The notes under the pieces are model-generated. The model was not told the origin of the DNA and made no database searches. It saw only the letters and a list, made by a program, of their open reading frames with translations. 64,000 nucleotides of DNA from Hyaloraphidium curvatum SAG 235-1 (taxonomy: Eukaryota; Fungi; Monoblepharomycota). The position numbers and the translations under genes are program-made. Every line of letters starts with the position of its first letter. The first letter of the stretch is position 1. The stretch covers positions 248,001 through 312,000 of the forward strand of contig JAIVFI010000037.1 in assembly GCA_025558095.1 (NCBI GenBank), given 5' to 3'. Shown piece after piece: positions 1,437 through 64,000 of the stretch.

Positions 1437-1574
1437 TCGGTGGAATGAATGTGGCTCCTGCATGGTTGAATACAATGGAACAGACGAACATCGTTAGCCG
1501 AAATGAAAGGAACCAAATGGTCGATTATGGGTGAGTATGTACAAGCATTCATCCAGTCCAAGAGTTGAATCGCA

Positions 1575-2565
1575 CTACCCTCCTTCCTTCCGCACCACGC
1601 CGTCCTCGTCCACGTACTCCCCCTTCTGCACCAGATCGTGGTCCCCGAAGGTCTCCTCCGTGTTCATGGCCTTGATCCAGTCGATCTCGAGCTCGAACGG
1701 GCCGGGCTGCCGCACGATGGAGAAGCCGACGGAGCGGACCTGCATCCGGTCCATCTCGATCTGCCGCTTCTGGATCCAGCCGTGGTTGGTGAGGAGGAAG
1801 TCGCGGAAGGGTATCTGCGGGGGTGCTGTCAGCGTCGCCCGGGCAGAGCCGGCAAGACGGCCCCACCATGATGGTCTCCCACTCCCCGGGCGTCTCAAAA
1901 AAGAGCCGGTGCTGGTACAGATCCTGTTCTATCGGCGAGTTGGTCTGCAGGTTGACGAACCATTGCCGCCCGTCGCCCCGACACCGGACGGCCAGGTAGC
2001 GGAAGAGGGTTGTGTCGAAGGAAGGGGTGTGGAAGAGGGTGAGCTGCTTCGGCTTGGCTTTGCAGGCCGCGTAGCCGAGGGCTTTGATGTTGCCCGGCAG
2101 CCCCGGCGGGACGTCGGTCGAGAGGTTGCCGCAGAACCGTCCTTGGGCCGACGCGTCAGCCCAGGTTCCGCGTCCCCGTGCCAGGCGGCCCACCCTTGTT
2201 CTCCGGCGTCAGCTCCAGCGTGGCCTCCGTCCGCCCGCCCATGTCCTTGTCGCTGCCCACGACCCAGTTGGCGAGGTCCGCCTGGGAGTTGAGCGTGTAC
2301 ATGGGGAGTTCTGCCCTCCATTCGCCAAAGTCCGTCTTGAAGGCTGGAGGTCCGGCACGGACCGCGATGAGTGTTCTCCAGAGTGCAGGGCGCGACGAGC
2401 GGGTACCAACACTTGGCCGTCTGCTTCCCGGCGTACCTGGAGGGAGGAGCGGGAAGGCGAGATCGGTGCCGTCAGCACACGCGTGCAGGACCTTCGGCGG
2501 GCCCGAACCGACTCCATAGACCGCTTCAGATATTGCCCCAAGCGACTCGCTGCCGCCGAGGCCAT
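1575..2565 (-). CDS. CIA30: Complex I assembly factor CIA30/NDUFAF1, multi-exon
   Basis: W..GSDKDMGG, YLAVRCRGDGRQWFVNLQT, DLYQHRLF, IPFRDFLLTNHG, GPFELEIDWIKA motifs spread over several short-intron-separated frames. Confidence 0.9.
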
Positions 2566-2662
2566 TTTCGCGGCTCGCAGCGGGGGGGGGGGGGGGGGGC
2601 GCGGGTTGTGTGGTTGCTTCCAATCCCTGCCGCGCCTCTTCAACCGCTGTCGCGTCGCCGGC

Positions 2663-5600
2663 ATGCCTCCGAAGGCAGCGCTCGCTGCCGCCGGGGCGGA
2701 GGGCGCGCCGCCGTGGTCGCCCGACGTGTTCGCGCGGCTGCTCGACGCGGTGACGGACGCGTTCACGTCGAAGTCGTTCGGCGTCCTCGGCGCGGCAAAG
2801 GACGCGTACAAGGCGAACCGCGACAGACTGCGGGCCGGCCTCGCGCACCCGCCGAGGGCCGACGCAAAGCGCGACGAGATCGCCAAGCATGGTGCGGACC
2901 GCGGGGCGGCGCCGAATGCTGGAAGGCACTCACCCCTTTCGCACCCCGTTCCAGGCAAGGCAACCGTCGGCGGCCGCGAGTACCGCGGCTCGGCCGCATT
3001 CAACTACAACGTGCTGTGCCTGTCCGACCTGCTGCACATGGACGAGGACTGGGCCGCGGCGATCCTGTTCCACGCGCAGTCGCGGATCGCAGAGTTCGGC
3101 GGCCGCTCGCTGCTGGCCACCGGCCTGGCAATGTTCCACGCCGAGCGCGCCGCCTGGGTCGAGGTCGTCATCTCCCTCGTGCTGGGCGCCCTGGACGACC
3201 GCGTGCCCGACGAGTCGCGCCAGCTGTTCGTGCACATGCTGCGGCCGCTCATGGGCGACCCCGTGTCGGGCAACGGCCTGCTCCGGACAGTCCTCGAGGG
3301 CCTGGACCAGGTCCAGGGCCAGCTGGCCAGGCTGGCGCAGGTCGTCGACGCGCCGGCGCCCGCCATGCCGCCGAACCCGCAGCAGACGCTGCTGGCGGCC
3401 ATCGGCGGCGCGGCCGTTGTCGAGGAGCACTCGGCCCTGTTCGAGGAGCAGCTGCGGCGGCTCAAGTACGCCGCGTGCCTGCTCGCGGAAAAGACCTCGC
3501 TCAACTACAAGGACGTGGTCTCGCTCCTGAAGCGGCTGCAGTCGGCCCAGGACGCGGGCGACGAGTACGCGGCCTCAGCCTGGCTCAGCGCGCTGATGCG
3601 CCAGAGCTCCGAATCGACTAGCCCGGCCGACGAGTCGCTGGCCGCCATGGCGGGCGACCGCGACTTCCTCATGCAGGCGAACGAGCTCGTGGACGGCGCG
3701 GGCTGGAGGAGCCAGGGGATGCGGCTCTTTGCAAAGATGTCGTGGTCGACGTACCTCAAGGGCTTCCAGCCTGTGAGCCATGCGATCCGCTGCCCTTCTT
3801 CCGTGCAAGCTGACGCCGCTCGCAGATTTACCTCACCCTCTACGACAGCATCGGACTCGTGCAGGAGAAGCTCGACCAGGGCGGCCAGGCCGCGATCGCG
3901 GGCGACATTGTCACCTTCATCCGCGAGCGGCTGCTGCAGCCGGCCGGCACTTCGGACGCCGACCCGGACACGGACCTCCGCGCCAAGTTCCTGCTCCCGA
4001 ACCTGCGCATGCTCTTGGAGCAGTTCATCCAGCGCTTCCCGCGCATCCTGCGCAGCCTCAAGGTCGCCGACGACGAGGCCGCGCAGATCGCCAGCGCCCA
4101 GGGGCGGCTGCAGGTGTCGCAGTCCGGCGGCATGGTCACCGCGCAGTCGGCCATCTCGGGAGGCGCGCGGCCCGACTTTACCAACTTTGTCGCGCTCATC
4201 TCGGAGCTCTACCGGGGCCAGGTCGACGCCGGGTGGGACTTTTGGAACGAGAACAGGCTGGTCAACTTCCTCAAGCTCGCGGCGGATTCGAGGTCCATGG
4301 TCACGCGCAAGGAGGTGCTCGGGATGCTCGGCGCGCTGGCTTCGGGCCCCCGGTCCTCGGAGAAGGCGTTCAACTTCCTCGGTGGCGCGCAGGCTATGGG
4401 CTTCGGGGGCCAGGGCGGGTACTCGTCGGGCCTCAGCTGGTACACCCTGTTCCAGGCGCTGCAGACCTATGCGCAGCTGCTCAGTCCGGCCAACACCGCG
4501 GTCGGGCTGCCGGACGAGGAGGTGGCCCTCGTGTCTTGCTTCCTGTCGGTGCTCACGCAGGTTTGTGCATGCAAAGTCAGGACCCCCGACCCTATCTCAC
4601 GCCTCGTCGCTTCCAGGTCGCCACGTATAACGCGGCTGCCCGCACAATCCTTTCGCAAGCCCGGGGCTTCGATTCCCTCGTCATCCTAGTGACCTGCGGA
4701 CTTCCCGTGAGCCTCAAGGCGTCTCTTCTGGACTCGCTTGCCGCCTTCTGCGTCGGAAGGGGCGAAAACATTGCCGAGCGCGTGTTCGGTCTGATCGAGA
4801 CCCACCAGCTCCTTCAGACCCACGGGATTCCGCTGAACGGACAGATGACCACCGGCCTCGTCGTGGACCTGGAGCAGATCGAGGTTGCCAGCATGCGCTA
4901 TCCGGCGACGGGAGCCTTTGTCGAGCTGCTGACGACCCTCATGGTCACCACCGGGGGCGTCGGGCCGGCTTTGGACAACCTGGGCAGCGGTCGGCGAAAG
5001 CCGGGCGTCTGGCCCTACGTCGACTACGTCGTGGACCAGGTGCTCCTCAAGCTCCGGTCGCGGAGCTACGTCGACCCCAAGGAGCGGTGGAAGCTGCAGG
5101 AAAAGTGCTTCCGGTTCCTGGAGACCTGTCTTGCCAACATGAGCTTCAGGGTATCGGGAAACCAGGGGCGGGACCGCAACGAGTTCCTGGGCAAGCCGGG
5201 AAACGCGGACCAAATCGACGTCAGCGCCGTCCTCTACCATGCTGGGTTCCAGGTCATGACCAAAACCCTCTCGGGCCCCAAATTCAGGCTGCTCGAGGAG
5301 TTGCTCGACGTGCTCAGGGGCGGCGTGGAGGCGGTGAACAGGAACCTGCTTGGCACCGCCGACTACCGCACGTGCTGCCTGCATGCCCTCCGCATCGCTC
5401 ACAAGATCTCGGAGAACCAGCGCCCTTTCGTTGATGCCTGCAGCATTCTTTCGGCGTCCGGCGTCGAGCCGCCGTTTGCCTCGAACCTCCCTTCCAACAT
5501 CACCACGCTCGACCAGTTCATGTTCTACCGCAACGATGTCGTGGCCAAGCTCGCGGGCTTCGTGGCGTGCACAGTCGACGATGAGATCGGCTGGCTCGCT

Positions 5601-53954: not shown

Positions 53955-55248
53955 TTTAGAAAGGCCGATGGTCGCCGACTATGGTCGCAGTTGGGTGTCT
54001 GGGATCTGGGACGATATGGGTTGTGATGACTACGCCGCCCGTCTCCCACAGGAGGGTGAGCAAAGTTTCTCCTCGTCATCAAATGCTCCTCAAATGCTCC
54101 AGTCCATTGCTAGGTCCCCCTACTGTACAGATAGATGGCCTGGCTTACACTGATTGCTGATTGCCCCATGAAAAGGCTAAGAAACAAGCAAGGTGAAAGA
54201 GAAGGGAGTTATTGGTAACCCTTCCATTTCCCAGTTTTCCTGTCCTACATTTGCCTTTTGCCTTGCCTTTTGACTATTCGATAGAATAGGAGGTTGAGGT
54301 CCAAAGTTCCCCCCCGGCGGGACAATCCCTTTTTTTTTCTTCGCAACAAATCGACTTTTCGCGTCGAGCTTGGCCGAACGCCGCCCGGAACCCGGTCCAA
54401 TGGCTCTTGTTATCCTATGCGCAGGTTATCGTGGGGTTGTTGGGGTTGTTCGGGGTTGGACCGTGGACGCCGACTATATGCCTTCGGACCTCCGGCGTCG
54501 CTGACCCTCCAGTTCTGTTGAATCGCAGCCAAGGCCCGTGCGAATCGCGCTTCATATGACACGTTGTGGCTACGGTGAGTCGGTTTCGGCTCCGCGACAA
54601 CGGGAGGGGGTGTGCTAGAGGGCTCCGCAGCGCCGCCGAATGTGCGAGGCTCTCGGTGGTGCTGGCCGCCTCTCCTGGCACGGCAACGCGGGCCACACGC
54701 TGCTTTCATTGTGAAAAGACGCATTGGAACGTTTGGGACCCGGGATTCGGATGAATCGAGGGTGGGGGGACGCGCCGGAGAATGGACCGCCCCAGGGTAT
54801 AGTACTCAGGGTATAGTAGTATTGGTGACCCGGACCTGCCCCTGGCTTGGCCGCTGTTACACCATCAGTTTGCTGCTAATTTGGCGTTTGTCGTCGTGCA
54901 TCTTTTTCATTTTCCCTGTTTTCTGTCCTTCATGGACTTTGAAATGAAGCTGGCGATGGAGTTGAGGGCCTTCTCCTTTTGCTGCCTCACTTTGATCGTG
55001 GGCTCGAACTCCTTGATGCTGAGAGCCCAGAGCCAGGTCTCCATGTTCCACTCGCGGCCCAGTGCTTCCAGTCTGGTCTGCAGCTTCTGGCGCCGCTCTG
55101 CATTTGCTGAACAGTGGAACAGAAAATGTTGTTCATCTCCAATGTGCTCAGGGTCATGCTTGCACATCCTCTGCTGCACCTCAAGTCCTTGGTGCCTGCC
55201 TGTTTCCACCTCCAGGTCGTGGGTAGAGCAGAGCAGCTTCTGGACGTC

Positions 55249-55423
55249 TGTCAGGACAGGCCTTGGAGATGGCCTAGTCATGGGTTGGTTAGGGAGAGCA
55301 TATGGGGGCAGCCCAAACACCATGTACCCCCACTGCTTCTCACTGTGTACATAGACATCCCGCTGCCTCGATGCTGTGCAGTCCCCGCTAGGCAGGGCCC
55401 AGCTGGCCCCTGGGTTCCTGACA
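55249..55423. mobile_element. Solo LTR (175 bp)
   Basis: TG...CA termini with 8-bp inverted ends TGTCAGGA/TCCTGACA; flanked by ACGTC/ACGTT (5-bp TSD, one mismatch); interrupts the LINE ORF. Confidence 0.8.
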
Positions 55424-55774
55424 ACGTTCCTCCGGTGTTTCTCCACCCGGATCAGCGACGGTGCAATGTGACCAAAGGTCATGTCACACATCCTCCAGAA
55501 GTGCAGCTTGTCGTTGTCCTTGAGCTTCTGGGCATTGATCTCCCTGAACTTGCCCTTCACAAGATTCTCCACAGTCTCCTTGGCCCATGAAAAAGTGTCC
55601 TTCTCCCACATCTCCCTCCACTCCTCTCCACCATAGTACACAAGTAGTTCCCTCAGGAAGGCAGCCCAGTTCCAGCACCCCTTCAGTGCCTCGATCTTGA
55701 GCTCCTTGTAGAGCAGGTACAATGCAGGGTCAGCTGTTTTGATACGCATGAGGAACTTGAGAGCCGACTCATGG

Positions 55775-55946
55775 TGTCAGGAACCCAGGGGCCAGCTGGG
55801 CCCTAGCGGGGACTGCACAGCATCGAGGCGGCGGGATGTCTATGTACACAGTGAGAAGCAGTGGGGGTACATGGTATTTGGGCCGCCCCCATATGCTCTC
55901 CCTAACCAACCCATGACTAGGCCATCTCCCAAGGCCCGTCCTGACA
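55775..55946. mobile_element. Solo LTR (172 bp), inverted relative to 55249-55423
   Basis: Reverse-complement match to the first LTR with the same termini; no TSD; flanks come from LINE positions about 0.8 kb apart. Confidence 0.8.
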
Positions 55947-56147
55947 GGTACACCCATCCCTTCCAGCTTCCTCCACAACCTTGGGCGCTCCACCGTGTCA
56001 AAAGCCTTTGTGAAATCTACAAACACCATGATCAGCTTTTCCTTGCGTGCCTTGGCCAAGGAGAAGAGCGCCTCAGCGAGGAACACAGTGCATGAAGGGT
56101 GGACCTCCGTGCCCGGAATCCAAACTGCGAGTCTTCCAGCAGCTTGT

Positions 56148-59100
56148 TAGAATAGAATAGTATTGGTGACCCGGACCTGCCCCTGGCTTGGCCGCTGTTA
56201 CACCATGAGTTTGCTGCTAATTGCAAAGTTCATCGTCGTCGTGTGTCTTTTTCATTTTCCCAGTTTTCCTGTCCTTCATGGACTTTGAGATGAAGCTGGC
56301 AATGGAGTTGAGGGCCTTCTCCTTCTGCCGCCTCGCTTTGATCGTGGGCTCGAACTCCTTGATGCTAAGAGCCCAGAGCCAGGTCTCCATGTTCCACTCG
56401 CGGCCTAGTGCTTCCAATCTAGTCTGCAGCTTCTTGCGCCGCTCCGCATTTGCTGAACAGTGAAACAGAAAGTGTTGTTCGTCTCCAATGTGCTCAGGGT
56501 CATGCTTGCACGTTCTCTGCTGCACCTCAAGTCCTTGGTGCCTGCCTGTCTCCACCTCCAGGTCGTGGGTAGAGCACAGCAACTTTTGGACATCCCTCCG
56601 GTGCTTCTCCACCCGGATCAGGGATGGTCCGATGTGGCCAAAGGTCATGTCACACATCCTCCAAAAGTGCAGTTTGTCGTTGTCCTTGTTCCTTTGGGCA
56701 TTGATCTCCCTGAACTTGCCCTTCACAAGATTCTCCACAGTCTCCATGAGGCCATGAGAAAGTGTCCTTCTCCCACATCTCCCTCCCATCTTCCCCGCCA
56801 TAGTATACAAGTAGTTCCCTCAGGAAGGCAGCCCAGTTCCAGGACCCCTTCAGTGCCTCGATCTTGAGCTCTTTGTAAAGTAGGTACAGCGCAGGATCCG
56901 CTGTTTTGATGCGCATGAGGAACTTGAGTGCCGACTCGTGGTCATGAACTGCAAGGGGGTACTGGCCAGTGATCGCATACAGACAGGCCAGGGAGGTAGA
57001 CTTGGGCAGATGAGTGACGGCACGAAGAGCCATGCATGTCACTTTGTCCCTGGTGCTTTCCCCGGCAAGGTACTCCTCCTTCGGCATCTCAACAATGAAC
57101 GGGTTCCCATATTGGCCCACTGCCTTGACCTTTGTGTTGTAGAGCTTGAGCTGGAGGTCAGGACTCATCCCAGGCTGCTCCCTGAAGTCGCGGAGCCAGA
57201 GCCCATAAGCAGCGTTCATCTTGGCCTCTCTGCCATGCACATGGTCCTTGCTCCGGCCGGTTGAGGTCAGCTGATACCCCAGAAGCTTGAAGCTGTCAAC
57301 CCTCTTCAGCTCCTGGTCCCTGTACATGACCTTTACACGGTGAGGTATCCTCCTGGCCATCCACTCTGTCTTGCTGACGTTGATCTCCAGCCCATTGGCA
57401 CTGGCATATGCAGACAAAAGATCCAGCTGCATCTTGGCATCCTTCACCGTCTTCGAGATCAAAGTGGTGTCGTCTGCAAAGAACAGAGCCAGTGTCACAG
57501 CCAGCAAGCTGACCATCCTCTCCTGATCCTCTTCCTCCTCAGACACCATGCCCAGATCCATCCCTTTTGCACCATTGGCCTCCATGAAAGCAGTGATGTT
57601 GTTGATGAACAAGATGAAGAACAGCGACGAGAGAGGGTCCCCCTGCTTCACTCCGGTCAGGAACTTGATGAAGTCTGACTTGGTCCCGTCTTCATCCCGG
57701 AGCCGTCCCCACACCCGCCCGAACGCCATCTCGAACATGTCAACAACCAGTTTGGGTACTCCCATCTCCTCCGCCAGCTTCTGCCATAACCTGGGGCGCT
57801 CCACCGTGTCAAAAGCCTTTGTGAAATCTACAAACACCATGATCAGCTTCTCCTTGCGTATGCGTGCCTTGGCCAAGGAGAAGAGTGCCTCGGCAAGGAA
57901 CACTGCATGAAGGGTCGATCTCCGTGCACGGAATCCAAACTGCGAGCCTTCCAGCAGCTTGTTGCACTCAGCCCAGGGAGCTAGCCGAGCGTTCCAGACC
58001 AGGGAGAAGACCTTCTCCAGCGTCCTCTCTATGCTGATGCCTCGGTAGTTGCCAGCCACGTTCTTGGGCCCCTTCTTGTGCAGCATCACCAGCAGTGTCT
58101 GGCCCCAGTCATCCATCTTGACGCCATTGAGCACGTCGTTGACGAGGTTGACAACAGCTTGCTTCAGTACTGCAGTCCCGTACTTGACGAACTCGAGCCG
58201 GATCCCATCCTCGTCCTTTGCCTTGCCGTTGGGGGCCTTCTTCAAGACCCTCTCCAGCTCCTTGAGGGTGATGGGGCGCGTACTCGGCGCTGGCCACCAT
58301 CTCCATGTGGCGTACCAGCTCCGCAAAGGGTACGGGGTTGCCCTTCCGCCTCGCATAAGTGTTGGTTCCCGATGGTGACATGCTCATAGACGTCAGACCA
58401 CTTGGGCCAGAGACGTGGTACCTTCTCTTTAGTCCAGTGGTCTAACAATAAGTCTTTCCAAGCAGTTGGTAGTGAAACAGAAAGTGTTGTTCGTCTCCAA
58501 TGTGCTCAGGGTCATGCTTGCACGTTCTCTGCTGCACCTCAAGCCCTTGGTGCCTGCCTGTCTCCACCTCCAGGTCGTGGGTAGAGCACAGCAACTTTTG
58601 GACATCCCTCCGGTGCTTCTCCACCCGGATCAGGGACGGTCCGATGTGGCCAAAGGTCATGTCACACATCCTCCAAAAGTGCAGTTTGTCGTTGTCCTTG
58701 AGCCTCTGTGCATTGATCTCCCGGAGCTTGCCCTTCACAAGATTCTCCACAGTCTCCTTGGGCCATGAGAAAGTGTCCTTCTCCCACATCTCCCTCCCAT
58801 CTTCGCCGCCATAGTATACAAGTAGTTCCCTCAGGAAGGCAGCCCAGTTCCAGGACCCCTTCAGTGCCTCGATCTTGAGCTCTTTGTAAAGTAGGTACAG
58901 CGCAGGATCCGCTGTTTTGATGCGCATGAGGAACTTGAGTGCCGACTCGTGGTCATGAACTGCAAGGGGGTACTGGCCAGTGATCGCATACAGACAGGCC
59001 AGGGAGGTAGACTTGGGCAGATGAGTGACGGCACGAAGAGCCATGCATGTCACTTTGTCCCTGGTGCTTTCCCCGGCAAGGTACTCCTCCTTCGGCATCT

Positions 59101-59585
59101 CAACAATGAACGGGTTCCCATATTGGCCCACTGCCTTGACCTTTGTGTTGTAGAGCTTGAGCTGGAGGTCAGGACTCATCCCAGGCTGCTCCCTGATGTC
59201 ACGGAGCCAGAGCCCATAAGCAGCGTTCATTTTGGCCTCTCTGCCATGCACATGGTCCTTGCTCCGGCCGGTTGAGGTCAGCTGATACCCCAGAAGCTTG
59301 AAGCTGTCAACCCTCTTCAGCTCCTGGTCCCTGTACATGACCTTTACACGGTGAGGTATCCTCCTGGCCATCCACTCTGTCTTGCTGACGTTGATCTCCA
59401 GCCCATTGGCACTGGCATATGCAGACAAAAGATCCAGCTGCATCTTGGCATCCTTCACCGTCTTCAAGATCAAAGTGGTGTCGTCTGCAAAGAACAGAGC
59501 CAGTGTCACAGCCAGCAAGCTGACCATCCTCTCCTGATCCTCTTCCTCCTCAGACACCATGCCCAGATCCATCCCTTTTGCACCT
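56148..59585 (-). mobile_element. Non-LTR retrotransposon copy 2: (TTCTA)n tail, RT unit, then a second 5'-truncated unit
   Basis: Tail TAGAATAGAATAG at 56148; RT ORF 56650-58356 frameshifted near 56750; internal junction 58470/58471; truncated at 59585. Confidence 0.92.
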
Positions 59586-59659
59586 TAGAATAGAATAGAA
59601 TAGTATTGGTGACCCGGACCTGCCCCTGGCTTGGCCGCTGTTACACCATGAGTTTGCTG

Positions 59660-61798
59660 CTAATTGCAAAGTTCATCGTCGTCGTGTGTCTTTTTCATTT
59701 TCCCAGTTTTCCTGTCCTTCATGGACTTTGAGATGAAGCTGGCAATGGAGTTGAGGGCCTTCTCCTTCTGCCGCCTCGCTTTGATCGTGGGCTCGAACTC
59801 CTTGATGCTAAGAGCCCAGAGCCAGGTCTCCATGTTCCACTCGCGGCCTAGTGCTTCCAATCTAGTCTGCAGCTTCTTGCGCCGCTCCGCATTTGCTGAA
59901 CAGTGAAACAGAAAGTGTTGTTCGTCTCCAATGTGCTCAGGGTCATGCTTGCACGTTCTCTGCTGCACCTCAAGTCCTTGGTGCCTGCCTGTCTCCACCT
60001 CCAGGTCGTGGGTAGAGCACAGCAACTTTTGGACATCCCTCCGGTGCTTCTCCACCCGGATCAAGGATGGTCCGATGTGGCCAAAGGTCATGTCACACAT
60101 CCTCCAAAAGTGCAGTTTGTCGTTGTCCTTGGGCCTCTGGGCATTGATCTCCCTGAACTTGCCCTTCACAAGATTCTCCACAGTCTCCTTGGGCCATGAG
60201 ACAGTGTCCTTCTCCCACATCTCCTTCCCATCTTCGCCACCATAGTATACAAGTAGTTCCCTCAGGAAGGCAGCCCAGTTCCAGGACCCCTTCAGTGCCT
60301 CGATCTTGAGCTCTTTGTAAAGTAGGTACAGCGCAGGATCCGCTGTTTTGATGCGCATGAGGAACTTGAGTGCCGACTCGTGGTCATGAACTGCAAGGGG
60401 GTACTGGCCAGTGATCGCATACAGACAGGCCAGGGAGGTAGACTTGGGCAGATGAGTGACGGCACGAAGAGCCATGCATGTCACTTTGTCCCTGGTGCTT
60501 TCCCCGGCAAGGTACTCCTCCTTCGGCATCTCAACAATGAACGGGTTCCCATATTGGCCCACTGCCTTGACCTTTGTGTTGTAGAGCTTGAGCTGGAGGT
60601 CAGGACTCATCCCAGGCTGCTCCCTGATGTCACGGAGCCAGAGCCCATAAGCAGCGTTCATTTTGGCCTCTCTGCCATGCACATGGTCCTTGCTCCGGCC
60701 GGTTGAGGTCAGCTGATACCCCAGAAGCTTGAAGCTGTCAACCCTCTTCAGCTCCTGGTCCCTGTACATGACCTTTACACGGTGAGGTATCCTCCTGGCC
60801 ATCCACTCTGTCTTGCTGACGTTGATCTCCAGCCCATTGGCACTGGCATATGCAGACAAAAGATCCAGCTGCATCTTGGCATCCTTCACCGTCTTCGAGA
60901 TCAAAGTGGTGTCGTCTGCAAAGAACAGAGCCAGTGTCACAGCCAGCAAGCTGACCATCCTCTCCTGATCCTCTTCCTCCTCAGACACCATGCCCAGATC
61001 CATCCCTTTTGCACCATTGGCCTCCATGAAAGCAGTGATGTTGTTGATGAACAAGATGAAGAACAGCGACGAGAGAGGGTCCCCCTGCTTCACTCCGGTC
61101 AGGAACTTGATGAAGTCTGACTTGGTCCCGTCTTCATCCCGGAGCCGTCCCCACACCCGCCCGAACGCCATCTCGAACATGTCAACAACCAGTTTGGGTA
61201 CTCCCATCTCCTCCGCCAGCTTCTGCCATAACCTGGGGCGCTCCACCGTGTCAAAAGCCTTTGTGAAATCTACAAACACCATGATCAGCTTCTCCTTGCG
61301 TATGCGTGCCTTGGCCAAGGAGAAGAGTGCCTCGGCAAGGAACACTGCATGAAGGGTCGATCTCCGTGCACGGAATCCAAACTGCGAGCCTTCCAGCAGC
61401 TTGTTGCACTCAGCCCAGGGAGCTAGCCGAGCGTTCCAGACCAGGGAGAAGACCTTCTCCAGCGTCCTCTCTATGCTGATGCCTCGGTAGTTGCCAGCCA
61501 CGTTCTTGGGCCCCTTCTTGTGCAGCATCACCAGCAGTGTCTGGCCCCAGTCATCCATCTTGACGCCATTGAGCACGTCGTTGACGAGGTTGACAACAGC
61601 TTGCTTCAGTACTGCAGTCCCGTACTTGACGAACTCGAGCCGGATCCCATCCTCGTCCTTTGCCTTGCCGTTGGGGGCCTTCTTCAAGACCCTCTCCAGC
61701 TCCTTGAGGGTGATGGGGCGCGTACTCGGCGCTGGCCACCATCTCCATGTGGCGTACCAGCTCCGCAAAGGGTACGGGGTTGCCCTTCCGCCTCGCAT
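59660..61798 (-). CDS. LINE-type reverse transcriptase with C-terminal Zn-knuckle-like domain, no endonuclease (712 aa)
   Basis: NGKAKDEDGI, KKGPKNVAGNYRGISI, QFGFR, FVDFTKAFDTV, GVKQGDPLSSLFF, FADD, GLEINVSKT, FKLLG, HDLEVETGR...C...GDEQHFLFHC. Confidence 0.93.
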   Translation of the reverse strand: MRGGRATPYPLRSWYATWRWWPAPSTRPITLKELERVLKKAPNGKAKDEDGIRLEFVKYGTAVLKQAVVNLVNDVLNGVKMDDWGQTLLVMLHKKGPKNVAGNYRGISIERTLEKVFSLVWNARLAPWAECNKLLEGSQFGFRARRSTLHAVFLAEALFSLAKARIRKEKLIMVFVDFTKAFDTVERPRLWQKLAEEMGVPKLVVDMFEMAFGRVWGRLRDEDGTKSDFIKFLTGVKQGDPLSSLFFILFINNITAFMEANGAKGMDLGMVSEEEEDQERMVSLLAVTLALFFADDTTLISKTVKDAKMQLDLLSAYASANGLEINVSKTEWMARRIPHRVKVMYRDQELKRVDSFKLLGYQLTSTGRSKDHVHGREAKMNAAYGLWLRDIREQPGMSPDLQLKLYNTKVKAVGQYGNPFIVEMPKEEYLAGESTRDKVTCMALRAVTHLPKSTSLACLYAITGQYPLAVHDHESALKFLMRIKTADPALYLLYKELKIEALKGSWNWAAFLRELLVYYGGEDGKEMWEKDTVSWPKETVENLVKGKFREINAQRPKDNDKLHFWRMCDMTFGHIGPSLIRVEKHRRDVQKLLCSTHDLEVETGRHQGLEVQQRTCKHDPEHIGDEQHFLFHCSANAERRKKLQTRLEALGREWNMETWLWALSIKEFEPTIKARRQKEKALNSIASFISKSMKDRKTGKMKKTHDDDELCN

Positions 61799-61883
61799 AA
61801 GTGTTGGTTCCCGATGGTGACATGCTCATAGACGTCAGACCACTTGGGCCAGAGACGTGGTACCTTCTCTTTAGTCCAGTGGT

Positions 61884-63809
61884 CTAACAATAAGTCTTTC
61901 CAAGCAGTTGGTAGTGAAACAGAAAGTGTTGTTCGTCTCCAATGTGCTCAGGGTCATGCTTGCACGTTCTCTGCTGCACCTCAAGCCCTTGGTGCCTGCC
62001 TGTCTCCACCTCCAGGTCGTGGGTAGAGCACAGCAACTTTTGGACATCCCTCCGGTGCTTCTCCACCCGGATCAGGGACGGTCCGATGTGGCCAAAGGTC
62101 ATGTCACACATCCTCCAAAAGTGCAGTTTGTCGTTGTCCTTGAGCCTCTGTGCATTGATCTCCCGGAGCTTGCCCTTCACAAGATTCTCCACAGTCTCCT
62201 TGGGCCATGAGAAAGTGTCCTTCTCCCACATCTCCCTCCCATCTTCGCCGCCATAGTATACAAGTAGTTCCCTCAGGAAGGCAGCCCAGTTCCAGGACCC
62301 CTTCAGTGCCTCGATCTTGAGCTCTTTGTAAAGTAGGTACAGCGCAGGATCCGCTGTTTTGATGCGCATGAGGAACTTGAGTGCCGACTCGTGGTCATGA
62401 ACTGCAAGGGGGTACTGGCCAGTGATCGCATACAGACAGGCCAGGGAGGTAGACTTGGGCAGATGAGTGACGGCACGAAGAGCCATGCATGTCACTTTGT
62501 CCCTGGTGCTTTCCCCGGCAAGGTACTCCTCCTTCGGCATCTCAACAATGAACGGGTTCCCATATTGGCCCACTGCCTTGACCTTTGTGTTGTAGAGCTT
62601 GAGCTGGAGGTCAGGACTCATCCCAGGCTGCTCCCTGATGTCACGGAGCCAGAGCCCATAAGCAGCGTTCATTTTGGCCTCTCTGCCATGCACATGGTCC
62701 TTGCTCCGGCCGGTTGAGGTCAGCTGATACCCCAGAAGCTTGAAGCTGTCAACCCTCTTCAGCTCCTGGTCCCTGTACATGACCTTTACACGGTGAGGTA
62801 TCCTCCTGGCCATCCACTCTGTCTTGCTGACGTTGATCTCCAGCCCATTGGCACTGGCATATGCAGACAAAAGATCCAGCTGCATCTTGGCATCCTTCAC
62901 CGTCTTCGAGATCAAAGTGGTGTCGTCTGCAAAGAACAGAGCCAGTGTCACAGCCAGCAAGCTGACCATCCTCTCCTGATCCTCTTCCTCCTCAGACACC
63001 ATGCCCAGATCCATCCCTTTTGCACCATTGGCCTCCATGAAAGCAGTGATGTTGTTGATGAACAAGATGAAGAACAGCGACGAGAGAGGGTCCCCCTGCT
63101 TCACTCCGGTCAGGAACTTGATGAAGTCTGACTTGGTCCCGTCTTCATCCCGGAGCCGTCCCCACACCCGCCCGAACGCCATCTCGAACATGTCAACAAC
63201 CAGTTTGGGTACTCCCATCTCCTCCGCCAGCTTCTGCCATAACCTGGGGCGCTCCACCGTGTCAAAAGCCTTTGTGAAATCTACAAACACCATGATCAGC
63301 TTCTCCTTGCGTATGCGTGCCTTGGCCAAGGAGAAGAGTGCCTCGGCAAGGAACACTGCATGAAGGGTCGATCTCCGTGCACGGAATCCAAACTGCGAGC
63401 CTTCCAGCAGCTTGTTGCACTCAGCCCAGGGAGCTAGCCGAGCGTTCCAGACCAGGGAGAAGACCTTCTCCAGCGTCCTCTCTATGCTGATGCCTCGGTA
63501 GTTGCCAGCCACGTTCTTGGGCCCCTTCTTGTGCAGCATCACCAGCAGTGTCTGGCCCCAGTCATCCATCTTGACGCCATTGAGCACGTCGTTGACGAGG
63601 TTGACAACAGCTTGCTTCAGTACTGCAGTCCCGTACTTGACGAACTCGAGCCGGATCCCATCCTCGTCCTTTGCCTTGCCGTTGGGGGCCTTCTTCAAGA
63701 CCCTCTCCAGCTCCTTGAGGGTGATGGGGCGCGTACTCGGCGCTGGCCACCATCTCCATGTGGCGTACCAGCTCCGCAAAGGGTACGGGGTTGCCCTTCC
63801 GCCTCGCAT
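61884..63809 (-). CDS. LINE-type reverse transcriptase, tandem-unit form truncated in the Zn knuckle (641 aa)
   Basis: Near-identical to 59660-61798 until ...HFLFH, then reads YQLLGKTYC* across the unit junction. Confidence 0.9.
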   Translation of the reverse strand: MRGGRATPYPLRSWYATWRWWPAPSTRPITLKELERVLKKAPNGKAKDEDGIRLEFVKYGTAVLKQAVVNLVNDVLNGVKMDDWGQTLLVMLHKKGPKNVAGNYRGISIERTLEKVFSLVWNARLAPWAECNKLLEGSQFGFRARRSTLHAVFLAEALFSLAKARIRKEKLIMVFVDFTKAFDTVERPRLWQKLAEEMGVPKLVVDMFEMAFGRVWGRLRDEDGTKSDFIKFLTGVKQGDPLSSLFFILFINNITAFMEANGAKGMDLGMVSEEEEDQERMVSLLAVTLALFFADDTTLISKTVKDAKMQLDLLSAYASANGLEINVSKTEWMARRIPHRVKVMYRDQELKRVDSFKLLGYQLTSTGRSKDHVHGREAKMNAAYGLWLRDIREQPGMSPDLQLKLYNTKVKAVGQYGNPFIVEMPKEEYLAGESTRDKVTCMALRAVTHLPKSTSLACLYAITGQYPLAVHDHESALKFLMRIKTADPALYLLYKELKIEALKGSWNWAAFLRELLVYYGGEDGREMWEKDTFSWPKETVENLVKGKLREINAQRLKDNDKLHFWRMCDMTFGHIGPSLIRVEKHRRDVQKLLCSTHDLEVETGRHQGLEVQQRTCKHDPEHIGDEQHFLFHYQLLGKTYC

Positions 63810-63923
63810 AAGTGTTGGTTCCCGATGGTGACATGCTCATAGACGTCAGACCACTTGGGCCAGAGACGTGGTACCTTCTCTTTAGTCCAGTGGTCTAACA
63901 ATAAGTCTTTCCAAGCAGTTGGT
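61913..63923. repeat. 2011-bp tandem repeat unit
   Basis: Junction ...CCAAGCAGTTGGT|AGTGAAACAG... recurs at 58470, 61912 and 63923. Confidence 0.95.
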
Positions 63924-64000
63924 AGTGAAACAGAAAGTGTTGTTCGTCTCCAATGTGCTCAGGGTCATGCTTGCACGTTCTCTGCTGCACCTCAAGCCCT

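Follow-up and report, generated by a model that had tools for sequence, protein, structure and literature searches.

Copies of a single family of non-LTR retrotransposon (a long interspersed nuclear element, LINE, without long terminal repeats, LTRs) fill the right-hand end of the 64,000-nucleotide stretch of the Hyaloraphidium curvatum SAG 235-1 genome analysed here (the window; contig JAIVFI010000037.1, positions 248,001 to 312,000). These copies belong to a gene-free island of 22.3 kb, and islands of the same LINE recur about once on nearly every large contig of the assembly. Given this distribution, we consider it rather likely that ~43 small chromosomes have their regional centromeres or pericentromeres at the LINE islands, and that the island reached by the window is a candidate centromere. 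Contigs of the assembly are numbered C1, C2 and so on; the window is C37:248001-312000 on a contig of 531,647 bp, and window positions above 64000 extend the same numbering into C37. The island lies at C37:302,813-325,086, so that the window holds its left ~9 kb (54813-64000) and a further 13 kb lie beyond the window end. A first-pass annotation of the window had proposed a retrotransposon telomere or centromere, of a kind possibly undescribed for this group. The centromere half of that proposal stands as a candidate by distribution, and the pattern is one already known from other LINEs (Zepp/ZeppL, Grem-LINE1) rather than a new kind of system; the telomere half is contradicted by the position of the island and by the ends of the contigs, as described below.

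Distribution and make-up of the LINE islands

The genome was probed with a 33-mer from the LINE tail (allowing up to 3 mismatches), with a second 33-mer, and by BLAST searches in which the tail, the body or the 5' part of the element served as query. The tail 33-mer gave 122 matches and the second 33-mer 95, and BLAST led to the same places. All of these matches fall within 44 loci. The loci lie on 41 of the 43 large contigs, which measure 444 kb to 1.6 Mb, whereas the 12 small contigs that complete the assembly have no match. The loci, which span ~1-20 kb from the first to the last probe match (the mapped C37 island measures 22 kb), together account for ~1.9% of the genome sequence. Random placement of 44 loci would leave a mean of 16 contigs empty, and two or fewer empty contigs were obtained in none of 200,000 trials. 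Thus, the occurrence of about one island per large contig is far from random and marks the islands as candidate centromeres rather than telomeres. The two features looked for in a centromere, a single island per chromosome-sized contig and the absence of genes, were both found, with three contigs carrying two loci and two carrying none.

The islands do not share a polarity. The first-pass annotation had proposed to test whether the array has the same polarity on all chromosomes, and this is not the case, given that 69 of the tail matches are forward and 53 reverse genome-wide and that several islands contain head-to-head copies. Of the 16 tail junctions in the islands examined, 11 directly adjoin LINE sequence, with both orientations represented, and no target consensus is evident at the 16 junctions. 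Copia-like and other LTR elements are found in the islands as well.

Several islands contain LINE pieces that have been multiplied as composite units. On C12 (481.4-494.2 kb; pieces L078 and L079), six tandem units of 2028 bp each combine a young LINE 3' piece (element 2779-4012, 97%) with an older fragment (1997-2571, 88%), and a longer young LINE copy follows the array. Four tandem units of 1239 bp on C36 (187-193 kb; L081 and L082) are each built from two old LINE fragments (element 2425-3392, 91%, and 1797-2037, 87%). The island on C41 (92.0-108.7 kb; L083 and L084) is an inverted duplication, the arms of which measure ~4.6 kb and are 99.4% identical, with an additional 2.6 kb in one of them, and a 62-bp repeat is present in ~13 tandem copies near its middle (C41:~99.0-99.8 kb).

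The LINE sequence is depleted in CpG (observed/expected 0.43-0.57) with TpG and CpA in excess, compared with a ratio of 1.1 in the flanks, and the other islands are depleted alike. At least four to five loci with a C5 cytosine DNA-methyltransferase domain are present in the genome (C12:523-549 kb, C4:158 kb, C4:762 kb, C1:1431 kb and C31:108-110 kb). Taken together, the CpG depletion and the methyltransferase loci suggest that the islands are probably methylated. A copia-like element inserted in the C37 island has a CpG observed/expected ratio of ~1.0, and thus looks younger than the CpG-depleted LINE sequence around it or escapes the same decay.

The LINE and the anatomy of the C37 island

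The full-length 5' end of the LINE was found by tracing longer copies on other contigs and is common to at least seven copies. As coordinate reference we used one natural full-length copy of 4018 bp rather than a consensus (L007:5584-9601, on C4). Intact copies have a single long endonuclease-reverse transcriptase frame that opens at nucleotide 442, and the 3' end is CCAATAC(TATTC)nTA. The reverse transcriptase domain matches RVT_1 of Pfam at E 1e-26 to 1e-31. Upstream of it, the N-terminal 260 residues align to profile positions 16-225 of 225 of Exo_endo_phos at E 0.0025 and also match Exo_endo_phos_2 at E 1.6e-4, both under the Pfam cut-off, and the translation shows the apurinic/apyrimidinic (AP) endonuclease motifs QN, AE, GDLNAH and SDH. 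The AP-endonuclease domain is therefore a prediction from a match that is weak but coherent. No zf-RVT match was found in the LINE by Pfam, which detected AP endonuclease and RVT_1 only, and a 146-codon open frame upstream of the main open reading frame (ORF) gave no zinc-finger match. The best solved relatives of the protein are R2 and human LINE-1 ORF2p; its protein-database neighbours carry PF03372 (Exo_endo_phos), PF14529 and PF00078 (RVT_1), and the nearest proteins among 5.8 billion are 23-28% identical to the ORF. Copies are truncated at varying 5' positions (element 1021, 1327, 1537, 1731, 2225, 2606, 2779 and 2816). By its reverse transcriptase type, its endonuclease, and its 3' tail with 5' truncation, the family is classified from sequence as a predicted AP-endonuclease-type non-LTR retrotransposon. 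The first-pass annotation had called it endonuclease-less, an appearance due to the 5' truncation of the copies in the window; the 4018-bp copies carry the AP endonuclease upstream of RVT_1. Two further observations concern the surroundings of this LINE. A second repeat family, unclassified, lies directly upstream of the full-length reference copy (L007:4300-5583, C4:662.3-663.6 kb) and also occurs in the islands of C29, C22, C19 and C41. In addition, an NCBI-annotated H. curvatum protein with methionine-synthase (metH-like) domains (P0005, on C1, 1,607,648 bp) is 85% identical to a short stretch (5%) of the LINE ORF, and would thus be a LINE/metH chimera.

The anatomy of the C37 island was derived from self-BLAST and from mapping onto the reference copy. 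The sense of the element runs right to left on the plus strand, and the LINE pieces and ORFs described here lie on the minus strand unless stated otherwise. The two edges of the island are formed by the oldest LINE copy, O1. Its 3' end (54813-55245; element 3575-4008, ~92%) makes the left edge and abuts unique DNA; O1 then continues at 55429-55775 (element 3225-3571, 91%) on the other side of a solo-LTR-like insert at 55248-55423. An inverted, 95% identical copy of this insert at 55775-55947 separates O1 from a second old LINE fragment, O2 (55947-56148; element 2225-2424, 89.6%). The right edge of the island is the O1 5' piece (77086 to 76698, C37:324698-325086; element 2816-3207, 92%). The O1 pieces end at element 3207 on the right edge and at 3225 on the left, have the same sense and similar identities to the reference (91-92%), and lie 21 kb apart. 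With the 5' part at the right edge and the 3' part at the left, O1 is a single founder copy that has been split, and the whole 22.3-kb island is nested inside it. When the outer flanks of the island were compared for a target-site duplication, no common word of 8 nt or more was found.

Between the O1 edges, a tail-bearing unit at 56148-58470 consists of the 3' tail and element ~1731-4018 (97-98%) and contains an ORF encoding reverse transcriptase only (56650-58356). It is followed by a tail-less partial unit at 58471-59584 (element 2606-3707, 97-98%) and by a second tail-bearing unit at 59585-61912 (97-98%), which begins with one extra TATTC tail repeat (59585-59590) and has its reverse transcriptase ORF at 59660-61798. 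Next comes an internal, tail-less 2011-bp tandem unit at 61913-63923, which is 100% identical to the equally tail-less unit at 63924-65934, the start of which (63924-64000) is the last feature within the window. The block from 67048 to 59591 as a whole comprises a partial unit (2606-3707), two tail-less 2011-bp units and one tail-bearing unit, all at 97-98%. Further to the right, a younger LINE copy (76510 to 76169, element 1021-1367, 97%; and 69536 to 67055, element 1537-4018, 99.3%) is interrupted by the copia-like LTR element with gag, zf-CCHC and RVT_2 (69537-76168, C37:317,537-324,168), and a small inverted LINE tail fragment on the plus strand (76511-76699, 90.7%) precedes the right-hand O1 piece. 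In the self-BLAST comparison, the sequence repeats every 2011 and 3443 bp with 98.7-100% identity; the 2011-bp period was obtained in this way, and Tandem Repeats Finder, with a longest period of 500, reported no tandem repeat.

The junctions between these units indicate how the array may have grown. The tail is fused to a 5'-truncated copy at 56148 and at 59585-59591, and the tail-to-position-2606 junction occurs twice with an identical (TATTC)3 tail, the second time at C37:315049-315054. In contrast to these, the junctions at 58470/1, 61912/3 and 63923/4 are tail-less chimeras in which element position 3707 is joined to ~1731. All units share the same 79-bp deletion (element 1830-1908) and the same 91-bp foreign insert, present once per unit (58361-58451, 61802-61892 and 63813-63903). 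The common chimeric junction, deletion and insert argue that the units are DNA-level tandem or segmental duplicates of one composite piece and not serial insertions, since a tail-less junction cannot result when a whole 3' end is copied by target-primed reverse transcription. Judged from the sequence, the independent LINE insertions in the island would number about five or six, and not one per unit. Between the two internal units there is no difference, whereas 10-13 sites distinguish the tail-bearing units from them, and about three quarters of these sites lie within ~340 nt of the position-3707 (tail) side (56459-56800 and 59902-60240), a pattern for which gene conversion or an independent renewal of the 3' ends may be responsible. 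As to the 91-bp insert, it is probably a very small mobile or solo-LTR-like element; similar pieces are found at C36:187119-187206 and C42:332555-332638, and some public-run contigs skip it.

Several claims of the first-pass annotation can be revisited at this point. It had described more than 9 kb of one non-LTR family, all on the minus strand, and one family in minus sense does extend over 54813-64000, interspersed with the two solo-LTR-like copies. It had the tail of each new copy fused to a truncated copy at 56147 and 59585; these junctions are real (56147/8 and 59584/91), and the tail-less ones were overlooked. That the most diverged copy is innermost, i.e. leftmost, is correct (89-92% vs 97-99% for the others). 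The interrupted copy does not resume inside the window, as had been stated, but element 2816-3207 of O1 is found again at the opposite edge of the island. Finally, the annotation's mechanism, serial reverse transcription primed on a chromosome end or break, is not supported, because the repeated units owe their identity to common descent as DNA.

Both sides of the island bear genes, so that the array is interstitial, in the middle of C37. To the left of ~54.8 kb the DNA is gene-dense with a GC content of 0.62 and a CpG observed/expected ratio of ~1.1, and includes genes for a Nup192 homologue, a WD40 protein and a VHS-FYVE-UIM protein; a cullin-like fragment and a PWI-DEAH helicase are among the genes to the right. 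At 54813 the GC content drops from 0.62 to 0.55, and from there on all long minus-strand ORFs in the window encode RVT_1 reverse transcriptase. No AT-rich core was seen in the C37 island, where the lowest GC content is ~0.54.

Centromeres, transposon sinks and chromosome ends

Head-to-tail stacking of large same-sense pieces and the fusion of tails to truncated copies had prompted the view that copies were added one after another, a DNA end priming their reverse transcription, as in a retrotransposon telomere or a healed break. Several observations make this explanation extremely improbable. Within its 531.6-kb contig the island extends from 302.8 to 325.1 kb and has genes to either side, and C37 itself ends in (TTAGG)n 206 kb from the island. 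The same repeat was found at the right ends of C35, C4, C42, C5 and C6, i.e. at six of ten right ends examined (pieces L019, L021, L025, L027, L029 and L031), in arrays of ~120-160 bp as assembled, with 120-158 bp at the four ends measured. No LINE sequence was present in the last 10 kb of four chromosome ends examined, which are GC-rich and not depleted in CpG. The annotation had advised a search for TERT and terminal TTAGGG. A telomerase RNA-binding domain was indeed matched at C15:409,344-409,646 (78 bits, neighbouring same-frame pieces summed), giving a candidate TERT gene, but searches for TTAGGG and TTTAGGG arrays found none, and the TTAGG repeat came from reading the contig ends. Telomeres of TTAGG type have been reported for Acanthamoeba (PMC9528979) and Aurantiochytrium (10.1101/2023.06.15.545109). 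A telomere or break would also be hard to reconcile with the mixed tail orientation genome-wide, with units that share junctions and indels as DNA duplicates do, and with a founder copy that continues at the opposite edge of the island. In fact, an interstitial array with the 5' part of the truncated copy further right, which the annotation had named in advance as telling against its reading, is what the split O1 displays.

A more serious alternative, though in our view still unlikely, is that the islands are heterochromatic transposon sinks, in which a self-inserting LINE stays where it first landed while purifying selection in a gene-dense genome clears insertions elsewhere. Nesting into older copies is directly seen, copia-like and other LTR elements gather in the islands too, and the CpG depletion fits silenced, methylated DNA. 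Chance founders, however, should have left ~16 of the 43 contigs empty and given many contigs several islands, whereas two are empty and three have two, and the four chromosome ends examined are free of the LINE. As for the tandem part of the C37 array, a mis-expanded or collapsed repeat in the assembly is improbable. The identity of the two internal units would be compatible with such an artefact, and the public runs consist of short contigs. Nevertheless, a 212-nt contig of an independent-format public run crosses the 58470/1 chimeric junction without any difference, the tail-bearing units are distinguishable from the internal ones, and analogous composite arrays exist in other islands. An artefact would in any case alter the copy number only, and neither the island nor the genome-wide pattern.

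The centromere reading therefore remains the one we favor, and a number of observations weigh against it. C1, C26 and C35 have two loci each, and neither the two 33-mers nor BLAST detected a copy on C16 or C38. At the left ends of contigs, (CCTAA)n is absent from all 50 examined (L018-L077), and these start in unique, often coding-like sequence; this asymmetry between left and right ends is systematic, and the contigs may not equal whole chromosomes. The copy number of the 2011-bp units is derived from the assembly, the public-run contigs all being short. A self-targeting transposable element could also survive in a single heterochromatic sink on each chromosome while the kinetochore assembles at another site. 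In Mucor, the LINEs lie beside the core that binds the kinetochore rather than making it up (10.1101/706580).

The sequence shows how the C37 island was built. A 5'-truncated founder copy was split when the same LINE family and LTR elements inserted later, and new copies preferentially land in or beside older ones in either orientation. Composite pieces were then multiplied as DNA into tandem units (2011 bp here; 2028 and 1239 bp elsewhere). By analogy with Zepp in Coccomyxa, the LINE may home to existing copies of itself, or to chromatin that is centromeric or methylated, and unequal exchange among same-sense copies may then have produced satellite-like arrays. More tentatively, and short of what we would call probable, the islands might be the functional centromeres of all ~43 chromosomes, with the LINE homing to centromeric chromatin convergently with Zepp and with the 1.2-2.0-kb composite units as nascent satellites.

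Relation to other clustered retroelements

The closest parallels in pattern are Zepp in Coccomyxa subellipsoidea and the L1-type ZeppL-1 LINEs in Chlamydomonas, both at putative centromeres. In the account of these elements in PMC8226300 (which cites Blanc 2012 and Higashiyama 1997), they form strictly about one cluster per chromosome and are absent elsewhere, and nested insertion into existing copies has produced arrays made mostly of 5'-truncated 3' ends. The Hyaloraphidium LINE resembles them in being of the AP-endonuclease type, in forming about one cluster per chromosome-sized contig with all matches confined to the 44 loci, in its nested insertion (the tail junctions that abut LINE and the split founder), and in arrays that are mostly 5'-truncated 3' ends joined by other transposons. 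In contrast, its host is a non-photosynthetic fungus of the Monoblepharomycota, in which no light-harvesting complex genes were found, and not a green alga, and much of the C37 array is DNA-level tandem duplication of composite units. The 3' ends differ too, in that Zepp reportedly has a poly(A) tail where the Hyaloraphidium LINE has (TATTC)n. Given that the nearest database proteins are so distant in sequence, the likeness to Zepp is likely convergence rather than kinship.

Among fungi, Grem-LINE1 is specific to gene-free pericentric regions of 15-75 kb in Mucor circinelloides; its domains are AP, RVT, zf-RVT and a zinc finger in ORF1, and it carries a poly(A) signal (10.1101/706580). The kinetochore of Mucor, which lacks CENP-A, binds a short AT-rich core with a motif beside the LINEs (10.1101/706580). 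The Hyaloraphidium element is likewise a fungal LINE with AP endonuclease and reverse transcriptase, specific to a single gene-free region of tens of kb on each chromosome. It is unlike Grem-LINE1 in having no Pfam match to an ORF1 zinc finger or to zf-RVT, and the C37 island is unlike the Mucor centromere in having no visible AT-rich core. Compared with the retrotransposon telomeres of Drosophila (HeT-A/TART/TAHRE) and the telomeric LINEs of Giardia, the C37 array taken by itself shows the head-to-tail, same-sense, 5'-truncated arrangement of non-LTR copies, whereas it is not terminal, the genome has (TTAGG)n telomeres and a candidate TERT gene, and polarity is not uniform. Transposon-rich regional centromeres, such as those with Tcn LTR elements in Cryptococcus and the G2/Jockey-3 islands in Drosophila, have been verified by chromatin immunoprecipitation of CENP-A. 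The Hyaloraphidium islands share with these a make-up of retroelement islands, here putatively centromere-specific, bordered by or mixed with tandem repeats in silenced or methylated DNA (methylation here being suggested by sequence composition), but are much smaller (~5-25 kb), are dominated by one LINE family, and are candidates by distribution.

To our knowledge, no centromere has been mapped in chytrid-grade fungi. Full-text literature searches on Hyaloraphidium returned nothing on centromeres or transposon islands; they covered this genus and not other chytrid-grade fungi, and do not prove that the islands are undescribed. A sequence marker present at one locus per chromosome provides testable centromere candidates for the ~43 small chromosomes of this fungus, and the arrays of composite tandem units illustrate cleanly how satellites can originate from fragments of transposons. 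If the centromere reading is true, Hyaloraphidium would join green algae and Mucorales as the third independent lineage with centromeres marked by one self-nesting LINE family, and this would support the idea that the clustering habit predisposes such LINEs to recruitment as centromeric DNA.

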